Shown here piece by piece: positions 23,167 through 61,151 of a DNA stretch of 64,000 bases. Positions within the stretch are counted from its first letter, which is position 1. The number at the start of each line of letters is the position of its first letter. A model generated the notes under the pieces. It saw nothing but the letters and a program-made list of their open reading frames with translations, was not told the origin of the DNA and did no database searches. Location of the stretch: IMG/VR virus record IMGVR_UViG_3300028840_001395, positions 62,001-126,000 of that record. One strand, given 5' to 3'. Made by a program: the position numbers and the translations under genes.

Positions 23167-23217
23167 GGGCCTGAGAGTGGGCCGCGACCTTTGACAAGTG
23201 AATAGGATTTCCCGTGC
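23167..23217 (+). promoter_or_regulatory. Hairpin + boxA-like element + 5' strand of long-range stem
   Basis: GGGCCTGAGAGTGGGCC then CTTTGACAAGTGAATAG; near-identical copy heads array 2. Confidence 0.65.
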
Positions 23218-23245
23218 TGACGGAATGCCACTGCCGTCAGCACAT

Positions 23246-23332
23246 GCTGGGATGGCGGAATTGGTAGACGCGCCGGTTCGAGAGGCCGGTGGACTTAGTG
23301 CCGTGGGGGTTCGACTCCCCCTCCCAGCACCA
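23246..23332 (+). tRNA. tRNA-Leu(GAG), C at position 33
   Basis: Cloverleaf, long variable arm, loop TCGAGAG, CCA. Confidence 0.75.
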
Positions 23333-23334
23333 AT

Positions 23335-23427
23335 GGAGAGGCAAGCCGATGGGTGACGGCAGCCGCTTGGAAAGCGGTCGAGGTCTGTTGAAGGCCCTTG
23401 AGGGTTCGACTCCCTCTCTCTCCGCCA
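23335..23427 (+). tRNA. tRNA-Ser(GGA)
   Basis: Loop TTGGAAA, CCA. Confidence 0.9.
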
Positions 23428-23439
23428 AAGAAACGCAGT

Positions 23440-23528
23440 GCTGGGGTGGCGGAATGGTAGACGCGCCAGGCTCAGAACCTGGTGGGACGCAAGTGCCCGT
23501 GGGAGTTCGACTCTCCCCCTCAGCACCA
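23440..23528 (+). tRNA. tRNA-Leu(CAG)
   Basis: Loop CTCAGAA, CCA. Confidence 0.9.
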
Positions 23529-23530
23529 AC

Positions 23531-23620
23531 GGAAGGTCAAGCAGATTGGCGACTGCAGCGGCTTGCTAAGCCGTCGAGGTGTAAAAGCCCTTGGGGGTTC
23601 GACTCCCCCACCTTCCGCCA
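23531..23620 (+). tRNA. tRNA-Ser(GCT)
   Basis: Loop TTGCTAA, CCA. Confidence 0.9.
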
Positions 23621-23630
23621 ACTTCGCTAC

Positions 23631-23706
23631 AGGGGGCGCTCTGGGTAAGCGGGCTGGTCTCCAAAACCGGCTGATCTGGGGAGTTCGATTCTCCCGCCCC
23701 CTGCCA
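23631..23706 (+). tRNA. tRNA-Trp(CCA)
   Basis: Loop CTCCAAA, CCA. Confidence 0.85.
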
Positions 23707-23723
23707 GATGATGCAAAGCGCGT

Positions 23724-23809
23724 GCGGTGGTGGTGGAATGGTAGACACGCCAGCTTGAGGGGCTGGTCCTGGAAACAGGGTGGAGGTTCGACTCCTCTTC
23801 ACCGCACCA
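23724..23809 (+). tRNA. tRNA-Leu(GAG)
   Basis: Loop TTGAGGG, CCA. Confidence 0.9.
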
Positions 23810-23817
23810 ATCTTCGT

Positions 23818-23892
23818 GCTGGGGTAGCTCATTGGTAGAGCACCTGAGTGAAGCCCAGGGTGTAGGTGGTTCGATTCCACTCCCCAGCACCA
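23818..23892 (+). tRNA. tRNA-Phe(GAA), atypical anticodon arm
   Basis: Loop GTGAAGC, CCA. Confidence 0.75.
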
Positions 23893-23903
23893 CAAACTTC
23901 GTT

Positions 23904-23980
23904 GGTTGGGTAGCTCAGCCCGGTAGAGCAGCGGACTGAAAATCCGCGTGTCGGCGGTTCAAATCCGCCCCTGACCACCA
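23904..23980 (+). tRNA. tRNA-Phe(GAA)
   Basis: Loop CTGAAAA, CCA. Confidence 0.92.
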
Positions 23981-23989
23981 AGACCCGTT

Positions 23990-24076
23990 CGGAGAGTTGA
24001 GCAGTGTGGTGAGCTTAGCGGGCTGTAACCCCGTGGCCGATTGGCTTTGGAGGTTCGATTCCTCTCTCTCCGACCA
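23990..24076 (+). tRNA. tRNA-Tyr(GTA)
   Basis: Loop CTGTAAC, CCA. Confidence 0.85.
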
Positions 24077-24085
24077 AGAACGCAT

Positions 24086-24173
24086 GGCGCGGGAAGCGTG
24101 TGGCTGGGACCGCCGGTTGACTGTAAATCAACTGCCTGATGGCTGAGGGGTTCGATTCCTCACCGCGCCACCA
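24086..24173 (+). tRNA. tRNA-Tyr(GTA)
   Basis: Loop CTGTAAA, CCA. Confidence 0.85.
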
Positions 24174-24195
24174 ACTTCGGGGGTATCATGCCCTC

Positions 24196-24666
24196 ATGAG
24201 CGTCTGGTTCCACGGAACGACCCAGGAGAACGCCGAGAAGATCCTACAAGAGGGCTTCCAGCCCGGCACCTACTTCGGTGAGCACCTGGAGGATGCTGTC
24301 CACTTCGGCGGTGGGTTCGTCTTTGAGGTGTACTTCAAGGAGGCACCCTCCAAGAACTGGCAGTGGCGCTGCTCCGAGGTCATCCCCGTGAGCGCGATCC
24401 TCAACCTCATCAGGTATCAACCCGAGGTCGTTCACTGGAGTCCAGAAGCAGCCCGCCGGATGAAGGCGGATCACTTCGAGGAGGAAGGCTACACCATCTG
24501 TGACACCTGCGATGGCAGAGGTCAGATGGAAGCCTACCCGCCCCTCACCCACTGGCGCGACCGGGAGAAATGCACCCTCTGCCCCGACTGTAGGGGGTAT
24601 GGCTCCCCAGACAAACGCGACGCCTGGGATGAAATGTCCAGGAAGATGGAAGAGGCAAAGGGTTAA
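24196..24666 (+). CDS. ADP-ribosyltransferase-like domain plus CxxCxGxG zinc finger
   Basis: WFHGTT...ILQEGF...YF; CDTCDGRG, CPDCRGYG. Confidence 0.55.
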   Translation: MSVWFHGTTQENAEKILQEGFQPGTYFGEHLEDAVHFGGGFVFEVYFKEAPSKNWQWRCSEVIPVSAILNLIRYQPEVVHWSPEAARRMKADHFEEEGYTICDTCDGRGQMEAYPPLTHWRDREKCTLCPDCRGYGSPDKRDAWDEMSRKMEEAKG

Positions 24667-59554: not shown

Positions 59555-59606
59555 ACGGGGAGTGTACCAAGGGCGGCTCCTAAAAGCAATCACCCTTTCA
59601 AATTCA

Positions 59607-59682
59607 TGGTGGGCCGAGAAGGATTTGAACCTTCAACCTTCAGGGTAAGAGCCTGCTGCACTATCCGTTGTGCTACCGACCC
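59607..59682 (-). tRNA. tRNA-Lys(CTT)
   Basis: Loop CTCTTAC, CCA. Confidence 0.9.
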
Positions 59683-59695
59683 ATGAATGAAAATG

Positions 59696-59771
59696 TGGTA
59701 GGCCCGGAGGGAGTCGAACCCTCAACTTCCCGGTTAAGAGCCGGGTACTCTGCCAGTTGAGCTACGGACCC
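59696..59771 (-). tRNA. tRNA-Lys(CTT)
   Basis: Loop CTCTTAA, CCA. Confidence 0.92.
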
Positions 59772-59799
59772 ACATGCTCGTGAAGGACGCCGTTTTAGA

Positions 59800-59929
59800 C
59801 AGGATTCGGGAGAGAGGCCCGGTCATCGGTGGGGGTCGAACCCACGACCTCCGGGTTGAAAAAGCCGTCAAGCCGTCCCGACGCTCTGCCGACTGAGCTA
59901 CGACTACGTGGACTTCATCCCGTCCCCTG
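59800..59929 (-). ncRNA. tRNA-like core with extended terminal stem (3)
   Basis: Canonical D and T arms, 21-nt anticodon loop, no CCA, flanks pair CAGG/CCTG and CGGGA/TCCCG. Confidence 0.6.
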
Positions 59930-60066
59930 AATGACTACTGACCTGAACCGTTCCAAGGTTCCCCACTGGCACCCTCGCGGGGGCGGAAAGGTAGGCTTGA
60001 CGGCCCCACCCCCAGGCACCAGGCTTCGCCAGGGTTCAGTCCAGGCGTTCATCCGGCGATAGAACT

Positions 60067-60143
60067 TGGTCGGGAAGACAGGATTTGAACCTGCGACCGC
60101 TCGGCCCCCAGCCGAGTGCTCTACCAGACTGAGCTACTTCCCG
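60067..60143 (-). tRNA. tRNA-Pro(GGG)
   Basis: Loop CTGGGGG, CCA. Confidence 0.9.
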
Positions 60144-60152
60144 AATGTCTCT

Positions 60153-60229
60153 TGGCGGGAATGACGGGAGTTGAACCCGCTTCCTCTGGCGTGACAGGCC
60201 AGCGCCTCCTCCACTTCGGCCTCATCCCC
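60153..60229 (-). tRNA. tRNA-Asp(GTC)
   Basis: Loop CTGTCAC, G73. Confidence 0.9.
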
Positions 60230-60238
60230 TTGCGTTCT

Positions 60239-60315
60239 TGGTCGGGGCGACTGGATTTGAACCAGCGACCTCTCGGATCCGAACCGAGTACTCTTCCAGA
60301 CTGAGCTACACCCCG
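60239..60315 (-). tRNA. tRNA-Pro(CGG)
   Basis: Loop TTCGGAT, CCA. Confidence 0.9.
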
Positions 60316-60325
60316 AAAATGACTG

Positions 60326-60403
60326 TGGCAGGGACGACGGGACTCGAACCCGCGACCTCCTGGGCGACAACCAGGTGTCCTAAACCAACTAGACCACGCC
60401 CCT
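60326..60403 (-). tRNA. tRNA-Asp(GTC)
   Basis: Loop TTGTCGC, G73. Confidence 0.85.
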
Positions 60404-60412
60404 GCGGCGTGT

Positions 60413-60487
60413 TGGCAGGAGTGACGGGAATCGAACCCGCCTCACTCGGGAGACAGCCGAGCTGCATCACCAGATGCACACACCCCT
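60413..60487 (-). tRNA. tRNA-Asp(GTC)
   Basis: Loop CTGTCTC, G73. Confidence 0.8.
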
Positions 60488-60706
60488 ATCGAATGGACGG
60501 ATGGGAAGGGTGTGACCCCTCCATCCCCGTGTCGCGTGGCTGGCCGTGTCACAGCCCTTTGGACTCGCGCCACAGGGACCCACATCTACGGGCACCCCAT
60601 CGTCGGTTACCCCGTCAGGAGTCTCACCTGCTCCTCCTCTCCCGTCCTTCCTCTGTCCGAGGCGACTTGGGTCTGGTGTGCATCTACACCACGGGGTCAT
60701 TGATCT

Positions 60707-60781
60707 TGGCTCCTCGGGAGGGAATCGAACCCCCGACACACTGGTTAACAGCCAGCCGTTCTACCGCTGAACTACCGAGGA
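60707..60781 (-). tRNA. tRNA-Asn(GTT)
   Basis: Loop CTGTTAA, CCA. Confidence 0.92.
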
Positions 60782-60793
60782 ACATTTGACTTT

Positions 60794-60868
60794 TGGCTTA
60801 CCGGACGGGACTCGAACCCGCGCGCTTTACGTTAACAACGTAGTGCTCTGCCGCTGAGCTACCGGCAA
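60794..60868 (-). tRNA. tRNA-Asn(GTT)
   Basis: Loop TTGTTAA, CCA. Confidence 0.88.
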
Positions 60869-61102
60869 GACAGACGATTCGTGTCCCTTGAGCTACCGGG
60901 AGGAGGGCCTTGGCCGCAACCCCAGAGGACTCTGCGTGGATGGCCTGCGGGGACTTCGCAGATTTCCGGGCGGGTGGACTCACCGCTCTGGGGGTCGCAC
61001 GCTGCCGAACCACAACCGCGCACCGAAGGCGTCCCTCTGGTCGGGGACGCCGAGTTCATGAAGCCGGGGGCCGGTTGGGAGCCGACCCCCGGCGATTTTT
61101 GC

Positions 61103-61151
61103 AATCGCGTTGCTATTCACTTGTCAGAGACCGTGGCCCACTCTCAGGCCC
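61103..61151 (-). promoter_or_regulatory. Hairpin + boxA-like element + 5' strand of long-range stem (array 2)
   Basis: GGGCCTGAGAGTGGGCC...CTCTGACAAGTGAATAG, matches 23167-23205. Confidence 0.65.

Follow-up and report, generated by a model that had tools for sequence, protein, structure and literature searches.

Transcription of ribosomal RNA (rRNA, or rrn) operons is protected from Rho by boxA together with the Nus factors. In the attenuators of the trp type, which contain four RNA segments, efficient translation of the leader leads to termination and stalling of the ribosome leads to read-through. The tRNA genes of phages are usually explained as aids to codon usage or as substitutes for tRNAs that host defence has eliminated, and to our knowledge the control of their expression is essentially unknown. 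The phage genome considered here, IMG/VR record IMGVR_UViG_3300028840_001395, is 435,804 bp long, has a GC content of 62% and carries direct terminal repeats. The stretch analysed, hereafter the window, comprises bases 62001-126000 of this record, 64,000 nucleotides (nt) in all, and contains 66 tRNA genes and a transfer-messenger RNA (tmRNA), split over two arrays (ARAGORN, Rfam). Each array is headed by the same two-part motif, in which an 18-nt first half is parted by a 5-nt spacer (GCGAC at site 1, ACGGT at site 2) from a second half resembling boxA. On balance, it seems likely that a control region of two stages precedes the genes of each array and has this motif as its downstream half; attenuation responding to tRNA demand would here be followed by the loading of Nus factors at boxA.

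An earlier reading of the letters alone (the original prediction) had placed the motif at 23167-23205 on the plus strand (site 1) and at 61151-61113 on the minus strand (site 2), and had taken it for an rrn-type antitermination leader of two mostly non-coding transcripts. The bipartite motif itself stands, with exact matches at both sites and none elsewhere in the genome. The description of the arrays needs correction, since array 2 carries at least 12 open reading frames (ORFs) and array 1 carries three. Both halves occur in the genome only at the two array heads and on the array strand, while near-matches with three mismatches (first half) or one mismatch (12-nt core) lie elsewhere. A scan of the window allowing up to three mismatches found no further copy. 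Shuffled versions of the second half never reached two matches (0 of 100), and those of the first half did so in 16 of 100 trials, so the first half alone is weak evidence. The two sites agree at 38 of 39 motif positions outside the spacer within leaders that are otherwise unrelated. In addition, a metagenomic relative of about 80% nucleotide identity (L199), found via the bipartite DNA pattern in metagenomes, keeps all 39 of the site-1 motif positions, while six bases just upstream and the promoter spacer differ. The motif lies 41 nt before the tRNA-Leu at 23246 at site 1 and 245 nt before the tRNA-Asn at 60868 at site 2. In the hairpin that separates boxA from this tRNA-Leu, L199 has T-A in place of C-G, with both arms changed and the pair preserved.

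The second half finds its closest described counterpart in the rrn antitermination leader, with its order of boxB, boxA and boxC and its factors NusB-S10, NusA, NusG and SuhB. As in the rrn leaders, the boxA of the phage lies in a transcribed leader or between the genes of a long untranslated RNA operon, has a small hairpin on its 5' side, and its sequence is the one found in rrn leaders of several phyla. A scan of one genome per prokaryotic species for the 17-mer CTYTGACAAGTGAATAG returned at least 120 loci. At no fewer than 39 of the 122 sites examined, a 16S gene starts 50-520 nt downstream of the exact 17-mer, a 23S gene comes next at 6, and about 20 further sites end at a contig edge within 250 nt, as rRNA operons cause in assemblies. 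Among the matches listed, the 80 titled records include 36 Planctomycetota (mostly Phycisphaerae and Tepidisphaerales), 20 Alphaproteobacteria and 5 Desulfovibrionaceae, and five candidate genomes have just two or three copies each, all before rRNA genes. Against the E. coli rrnH leader TGCTCTTTAACAATTTATCAG, the 17-mer shows 12 of 17 identities, the boxA core CTTT(A/G)ACAA included. The CTCTGAC variant of site 2, CTCTGACAAGTGAATAG, also occurs naturally, 94 nt before a 23S gene in L154. Based on the identity to bacterial rrn leaders and the alignment with rrnH, the second half is therefore, as far as sequence can tell, a genuine rrn-type boxA plus a co-conserved 3' flank. Promoters are predicted 200 and 700 nt upstream of boxA, the motif and the arrays share a strand, and boxA is predicted to be unpaired in centroid folds. 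It is likely that the boxA of the phage acts as a Nus-dependent antitermination site. The survey of boxA elements in the Nus regulon left non-coding RNAs out of consideration (PMC5725501). As a side observation, the CTCTGACAAGTGAATAG variant is followed after 15 nt by a tRNA-Asp, with a second tRNA-like gene also present, in a Phycisphaerales genome (G004, contig C89, cellular or prophage; L186:447-709, also L138), which shows that boxA-led tRNA genes exist outside rRNA operons in a candidate host lineage.

The resemblance to rrn leaders does not extend to the first half. The stretch GGGCCTGAGAGTGGGCC is predicted to form a stem of 5 bp closed by a loop of 6 nt, whose z-scores of +0.5 and +0.9 against shuffles indicate no gain in stability, and it is absent from the bacterial leaders examined. 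Unlike the rrn leaders, the phage has a 5' hairpin that is weak and phage-specific, no boxC-like GU-rich element was recognised, and boxA heads viral tRNA arrays downstream of a terminator-containing attenuator that rrn leaders lack. The original prediction is supported, at the level of sequence, in identifying the second half as the boxA of rrn leaders and in its predicted position on the transcript. Its boxB hairpin is not supported, on the two counts just given, and its account lacked the attenuator between promoter and motif. The first half appears instead to be specific to this phage and not rrn-like. Its 18-mer AGGGCCTGAGAGTGGGCC is perfectly identical at both sites and in L199, which argues for a sequence-specific role. 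Matches to GGGCCTGAGAGTGGGCC in two other viral contigs, L179 and L180, were set aside as chance, since these contigs have no tRNAs and the context is unrelated.

The same boxA is found in other viruses. In viral contigs the 17-mer has 56 matches, against 2 for a reversed 17-mer control. In 11 independent families of viral contigs, ranging from 32 to 56% GC, tRNAs of the same strand follow the 17-mer after 10-480 nt, and it either heads their array or lies within it; several of the boxA-bearing contigs are 370-500 kb long. The boxA of the E. coli dialect behaves differently: in viral contigs the enterobacterial 18-mer marks rrn leaders at prophage ends and presumed lambdoid nut-like sites, with no tRNA arrays.

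Upstream of the motif, each array is preceded by a promoter, a short leader ORF and an intrinsic terminator, an arrangement closest to that of the leader-peptide attenuators (trp, his, thr, leu and pheA). The phage system shares with these a short ORF directly after the promoter with the regulatory codons inside it, mutually exclusive 1:2, 2:3 and 3:4 pairings of which 3:4 is the intrinsic terminator, and a stop-adjacent segment that would be masked by the terminating ribosome. It differs in controlling tRNA genes rather than biosynthetic enzymes and in being followed by boxA. Moreover, the phage leaders contain no run of codons for a single amino acid; they list codons, synonymous ones included, for every species of their array (8 and 14 amino acids). 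The phage attenuator is thus a variant of the trp/his/thr class and not a member of it. The T-box riboswitches are likewise leaders that sense the state of tRNA and control a downstream terminator. In contrast to the phage leaders, where sensing would proceed via the translation of many codons, a T-box binds one uncharged tRNA directly and controls aminoacyl-tRNA synthetase or amino-acid genes. An Rfam search of both leaders (gathering thresholds or E<=1) found no T-box or other family, and the only hits in the window were tRNAs and the tmRNA.

The codon content of the leaders mirrors the arrays. After ATG AAC CGC, leader 1 continues with 22 consecutive codons (4-25) that are all cognate to array-1 tRNAs, comprising three Thr, four Ser and four Leu codons together with Phe, Trp, Tyr, Arg-CGG and Glu. 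It samples all 17 of the anticodon species of array 1 (P 3.5e-5 against random ORFs with the codon usage of the phage), and 24 of its 32 codons are cognate (P 5e-6). A run of 22 was never reached in 200,000 random trials, and the next best among 2593 real small ORFs of the genome (six frames) was 12. Leader 2 samples 28/28 array-2 species (P 0.002), compared with a maximum of 27 in 630 genome ORFs of 45-55 codons. When the leaders are read one base out of frame, the pattern is gone. The relative L199 provides a further comparison, with six differing codons in its leader. Four lie within the sampler stretch and stay in the array-1 codon set, although two of them encode another amino acid; of those outside it, one has moved into the set. 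Such substitutions are as they should be if the stretch serves as a list of codons and not as a functional peptide.

The predicted folds of the leaders are those of an attenuator. Folding was carried out on full and truncated leaders, with and without a ribosome mask, the masks being crude. At site 1, the Thr codons CACCACCT of region 1 pair with AGGTGGTG inside region 2 (1:2). The 5' part of region 2, GGCCGGAGG, copies the 3' arm of the terminator and pairs with its 5' arm (2:3), as seen in a fold of RNA truncated at the terminator loop. This 2:3 pairing is lost once the stop codon (23096-23098) is masked by a ribosome footprint. Site 2 follows the same logic, with region 1 GCCAGCACC (61701-61693), region 2 GGTGCCTGGCT (61652-61642) overlapping the stop codon, region 3 AGCCGGGCACC, and region 4 GCCTGGCT plus the T9 run; here too the 5' arm of the terminator pairs alternatively with region 2. 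Terminator 1 directly abuts the motif and is identical in L199. At site 2 the order is terminator, Endonuclease VII ORF and motif. This ORF, which has no counterpart at the otherwise parallel site 1, is probably a mobile nuclease and would be expressed on read-through only. Overall, it is very likely, judging from codons and folds, that the half of the control region upstream of the motif is a translation-sensing attenuator tuned to the tRNAs of its own array.

Five other phage arrays with the same boxA (GC 32-53%) have the same design of promoter, sampling leader, terminator, boxA and tRNAs. In L039 (494 kb, 49% GC), the leader MNNKIVHQVIWHVITFRGKGC, the terminator and boxA precede Trp Trp Val His Ile Ile Val Met, and 6/6 species are sampled. 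In L055 (32% GC), 13 consecutive codons of the leader MKQNLSSSLSCLYLSLSNRALTLQG match all 10 species (10/10) of an array that follows terminator and boxA and reads Cys Leu Tyr Leu Leu Leu Ser Ser Ser Ser. The leader of L038 (498 kb) has 29 cognate codons among 35 and samples 12/12 species (P 4e-10); it is followed by the terminator, a tRNA-Gly, boxA and the rest of the array. In L031 boxA is likewise internal, the leader MLRYQWKSNNSFAPP... and the terminator being followed by Asn Phe Trp, boxA and then Tyr Asn Gln Asn ... (8/9 species). The leader of L008 is rich in all four Ala and all four Thr codons and precedes Ala Ala, boxA, Ala Cys Asp Asp Thr Thr Thr Met (8/9 species). For the seven leader-array pairs, the true pairing scores as the single best of 5040 permutations, and the attenuator lies upstream of boxA in 7/7 cases. 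A mutually exclusive antiterminator masked by a ribosome at the stop codon is predicted in L039 and L055 and is weaker in L038 and L031. The design was not recognised in every array examined: in L032 a short ORF overlaps boxA, but its codons match only marginally and a terminator is missing, L006 and L034 have no clear leader, and the Streptomyces phage Faust, whose tRNAs are scattered, has no sampling leader.

By analogy with the described systems, we infer leader translation, ribosome stalling, Nus binding and Rho resistance as the steps of the following model. Host RNA polymerase would start at the σ70-type promoter and transcribe the leader ORF, which carries at least one codon per tRNA species of its array. 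When the leader is translated smoothly to its stop codon, the ribosome would cover region 2, the terminator would form and transcription would stop. When a ribosome stalls on a scarce sampled tRNA, region 2 would pair with the 5' arm of the terminator and the polymerase would read through, such that the array is transcribed on demand. Possible causes of shortage are, for instance, host shut-off or cleavage by the anticodon nucleases of host defence systems. In the second stage, boxA CTYTGACAAGTGAATAG in the read-through RNA would recruit NusB-S10, NusA and NusG of the host as in rRNA operons, and the Nus-loaded polymerase would resist Rho and stay processive over arrays of 4 kb and 15 kb, large parts of which are ribosome-free. 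The attenuator and boxA would belong together because no ribosome trails the polymerase past the leader stop, so that kilobases of untranslated RNA would need protection from Rho. Whether huge phages of several unrelated lineages share a class of codon-sampling leader-peptide attenuators, which would turn an array on when any sampled tRNA is short and then confer termination resistance through boxA, with the 18-mer perhaps recruiting a NusG paralogue of the phage, is a generalization whose chances appear evenly balanced.

Features of the two array heads and related loci. Positions are those of the window unless a contig is named.
Feature	Position	Strand	Description	Basis
Shared 10-mer, copy 1	22918..22927	+	AGTAGTCTGG	k-mer comparison of upstream regions
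Array-1 promoter	22941..22968	+	TTGACA-16-TATCCT; module GCTTGACAA-N13-GTGTATCCTGG	scan, 10/12 match
Leader ORF 1	22997..23098	+	33 codons, MNRLFTTTSTTTLSLTWLSRSYLSERRPEVVSG then stop; holds attenuator region 1 CACCACCT (23014-23021) and region 2 GGCCGGAGGTGGTG (23076-23089)	
Attenuator 1 intrinsic terminator	23123..23163	+	stem GAAACCCCCTCCGGC / GCCGGAGGGGGTTTC, tail TTTCGTGCTT	fold
First half, site 1	23166..23183	+	phage-specific element AGGGCCTGAGAGTGGGCC (18-mer; 17-mer GGGCCTGAGAGTGGGCC at 23167-23183); weak 5-bp hairpin	
Second half, site 1	23189..23205	+	rrn-type boxA with conserved 3' flank, CTTTGACAAGTGAATAG	
Hairpin between boxA and first tRNA	23214..23243	+	10 bp, GTGCTGACGG ... CCGTCAGCAC	fold
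tRNA array 1	23246..27123	+	22 tRNAs: Leu, Ser, Trp, Phe, Tyr, Thr, Glu, Arg-CCG; three ORFs between	ARAGORN, Rfam, Pfam
tmRNA	28688-29048	+	one-piece, tag peptide ANDEAVLQAA; just 3' of array 1	
tRNA array 2	46117..60868	-	44 tRNA genes, 14 amino acids; at least 12 ORFs in between	ARAGORN, Rfam, Pfam
Three hairpins 3' of site-2 boxA	61028..61108	-	GCGATT-GCAAA-AATCGC; 12-bp GC-rich stem without U tract; GGCGTCCCC...GGGACGCC	fold
Second half, site 2	61113..61129	-	boxA variant CTCTGACAAGTGAATAG	
First half, site 2	61135..61152	-	second copy of AGGGCCTGAGAGTGGGCC (GGGCCTGAGAGTGGGCC at 61151-61135)	
Endonuclease VII family ORF	61166..61573	-	between attenuator 2 and motif	Pfam PF02945, E 6e-24
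Attenuator 2 intrinsic terminator	61577..61612	-	AAAGCCGGGCACC ... GGAGCCTGGCTTT, then T9 run	fold
Leader ORF 2	61640..61792	-	50 codons, MLSRFPAPKTERMAVAARATGVVFGMTGRIRQHQTPVAANGCDPKREVPG then stop; GAAGGAG Shine-Dalgarno 10 nt upstream of ATG	
Array-2 promoter	61844..61871	-	TTGACA-16-TATCAT; module as in array 1	scan, 11/12 match
Shared 10-mer, copy 2	61969..61978	-	AGTAGTCTGG	k-mer comparison
NusG-family gene	G000:C1:32102-32680	-	L181:1258-1836	
Neighbour of NusG-family gene	G000:C1:31416-32021	-	L181:572-1177	

The promoters upstream of the leaders bear on whether the motif might itself be the promoter of the array, with TTGACA or CTGACA as its -35 box or with the whole block serving a phage sigma-like factor, so that transcription would restart after the terminator. 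TTGACA is the consensus -35 box, the site-1 motif begins 1-3 nt past the terminator, and one of the phage proteins has a sigma region 4 domain. The 17-mer is also intergenic in small cultured phages, found there in promoter-like spots only, and in small phages of the Streptococcus, Kagunavirus and Rhizobium groups it looks like part of an ordinary promoter, namely the -35 box with its spacer. In low-GC prophage contigs (L010, L017, L020, L025, L027, L029, L033, L044 and L051) and in the Streptococcus phages Javan576 and LF2, it occurs once or twice, about 360 nt apart. In the low-GC Streptococcus prophages it reads TTGACA-17-TAAGAT/TATGAT, apparently an ordinary promoter. The 17-mer is not a boxA in every context. 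At the two phage sites, however, no -10-like hexamer lies 16-18 nt downstream, the downstream sequences differ from each other, and site 2 reads CTGACA. In L031, L039 and L055 the next tRNA begins 10-18 nt past the 17-mer, and its TTGACA is not a -35 box there because the start point, about 21 nt downstream, would be located within the tRNA. The identical 17-mer of rrn leaders and 16S-23S spacers belongs to transcribed RNA. Furthermore, strong consensus promoters lie upstream of the motif at both sites. Their extended module, GCTTGACAA-N13-GTGTATCMTGG, occurs twice in the genome, once per array, and in L199 the hexamers of the array-1 promoter are conserved and the spacer is variable. Because all genes upstream of site 1 run in the opposite direction, the promoter at 22941-22968 is the first on the plus strand. 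A σ70 promoter within the motif was rejected given the lack of a -10 hexamer and the closeness of the tRNAs in other phages, and it is quite unlikely that the motif is an array promoter of either kind.

A second possibility is that a phage factor acts instead of, or besides, NusB-S10, with the 18-mer recruiting either a NusG-like protein (ops-like, on non-template DNA) or an N-like protein (nut-like, on RNA) and boxA being auxiliary. The 18-mer is the same at both sites and in L199 while spacers and flanks vary, and it is found only at the head of the two long operons. In addition, the phage encodes a 192-amino-acid (aa) protein of the NusG family, with Pfam matches to NGN (20 bits) and KOW, a match to PHROG 6386 'transcription antiterminator' (E 4e-5) and one to Thermotoga NusG, PDB 2lq8 (E 7e-4); five other boxA phage records without the 18-mer also lack a NusG match. 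All of these NusG matches are below or near the family thresholds, yet they are mutually concordant. As with RfaH and ops and the specialised NusG paralogues LoaP, ActX and TaA, there is a NusG-family gene and a short conserved leader element limited to a few long operons. Unlike in those systems, the 18-mer has no similarity to ops, nothing ties the protein, itself a weak assignment, to the site, so that the link between them is conjecture, and the correlation between 18-mer and NusG comes from a single lineage. A single-sequence AlphaFold model of the protein had a predicted local distance difference test score (pLDDT) of 34 and was unusable, and the hairpin of the 18-mer, as noted, is no stabler than shuffled sequence. 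Lambdoid nut sites (boxA and boxB, acting with N) are comparable in that a phage uses a boxA of the host type to make RNA polymerase termination-resistant. They differ in that the phage described here has the hairpin before boxA, the rrn order, and that the hairpins after boxA differ between its sites. No lambdoid N-like protein turned up in the phage, although no search was aimed at one. A phage factor acting in either of these ways is unlikely. It is very unlikely that boxA is a mere passenger, that is, a relic of a host rrn or tRNA operon captured along with tRNA genes, or an RNA-processing landmark, with no part in antitermination. Phage tRNA genes are often host-derived, the Phycisphaerales locus described above has the same variant 15 nt before tRNA-Asp, and in several phage arrays boxA lies between tRNAs; but the 17 nt are held exactly in phages of 32-62% GC whose flanks have no similarity, the two copies agree within unrelated leaders at all but one of the compared positions, boxA is perfectly conserved in L199, and its place downstream of the attenuator is constant.

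Besides the promoter-like occurrences of the 17-mer, several observations weigh against attenuation followed by Nus loading. The match to rrn leaders, which the original prediction had sought in the host, holds at the level of candidate lineages. Site 2 has a C at boxA position 6, and in the boxA of E. coli suhB a double mutation that kills function includes this position (PMC5725501); the natural variant ahead of the 23S gene in L154, however, has this C as well. No NusB or S10 gene is present in the phage genome, which would leave it wholly reliant on host factors. A simple terminator scan lists neither terminator, the T run at site 1 being short. Since 72% of phage codons are read by array 2, the cognate share of leader 2 alone (41/50, P 0.09) falls short of significance. 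In the classical model, the late sampler codons of leader 1 would not yield read-through. Finally, 15-25 nt separate the antiterminator segment of L038 and L031 from the stop codon downstream, and a simple ribosome model masks the segment only in part.

If the two-stage reading is correct, viruses have taken two bacterial mechanisms, leader-peptide attenuation and Nus antitermination of the rrn type, and recombined them to adjust the supply of tRNAs to demand. This would provide a testable explanation of why arrays group particular tRNAs. Regulation by boxA and Nus factors would no longer be confined to rRNA, suhB and genes of ribosomal proteins but would include tRNA operons of viruses. The signature of a leader ORF whose codons mirror the array would find regulated arrays and define transcription units in uncultured huge phages, the leaders would be natural multi-tRNA sensors with a possible use as reporters of translational stress, and the dialect of boxA could give a clue to host range. 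A full-text search of the literature, incomplete in coverage, found no earlier account that places boxA in phage tRNA arrays or tRNA genes under leader-peptide attenuation.

Several further observations concern the surroundings of these elements. The shared 10-mer AGTAGTCTGG is preceded by CTCGGGC-like bases and lies 23 and 107 nt upstream of the two array promoters, respectively. Four nt past the site-2 boxA, a 6-bp hairpin with the pentaloop GCAAA (61092-61108, minus strand) recalls the lambdoid layout of boxA followed by boxB; the hairpin after the site-1 boxA differs, having a 10-nt loop. The divergent NusG-family gene, which is outside the window, adjoins genes for a sigma-70 region 4 protein and a DnaX-like clamp loader. 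Two short metagenome contigs that fit the bipartite pattern, L197 and L198, were rejected as a separate repeat-rich element with no tRNAs and no similarity to the window. In both (L197:1392-1520, minus strand; L198:736-870, plus strand), TGAGAGTGGGCCAC...TGACAAGTGGACC is followed by repeated CCCTAAGTGGAC units, to which L198 adds an inverted GGCCCACTCTCA, and the element looks iteron-like.

Just upstream of array 1 on the opposite strand lie the gene for a protein of 1003 aa whose catalytic core is that of a eukaryotic-type topoisomerase IB (19025-22036, minus strand) and a Cpn60/GroEL-family chaperonin gene (17363-18973, minus strand). The topoisomerase IB protein, used as a query for relatives, found none in viral contigs. 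The GroEL shares 37-42% identity with those of 120 Planctomycetota genomes, the only phylum compared, and is uninformative on the host; the match of the tmRNA to candidate host genomes is confined to its conserved 3' end. The ORFs of array 2 encode PD-(D/E)XK and HNH nucleases, nucleotidyltransferases, an ATP-grasp protein, RNase HII and a metallo-beta-lactamase (MBL)-fold protein, with the Endonuclease VII also counted there. Under standard wobble rules, the two arrays jointly decode every sense codon in the phage genes, and the amino acids are divided almost cleanly between them, 8 in array 1 and 14 in array 2. Two tRNA-like genes of array 2, at 52406-52481 and 59821-59907 (both minus strand; ARAGORN), have irregular anticodon loops with a 4-base 'tatc' and a 2-base 'cg', respectively. 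Both pass the Rfam tRNA threshold, and they could be frameshift suppressors, intron-bearing tRNAs or mis-calls. The tRNA-Ile with the anticodon tat (48534-48628, minus strand) is 95 nt long and exceeds the size of a class I tRNA, an intron or insertion being possible.

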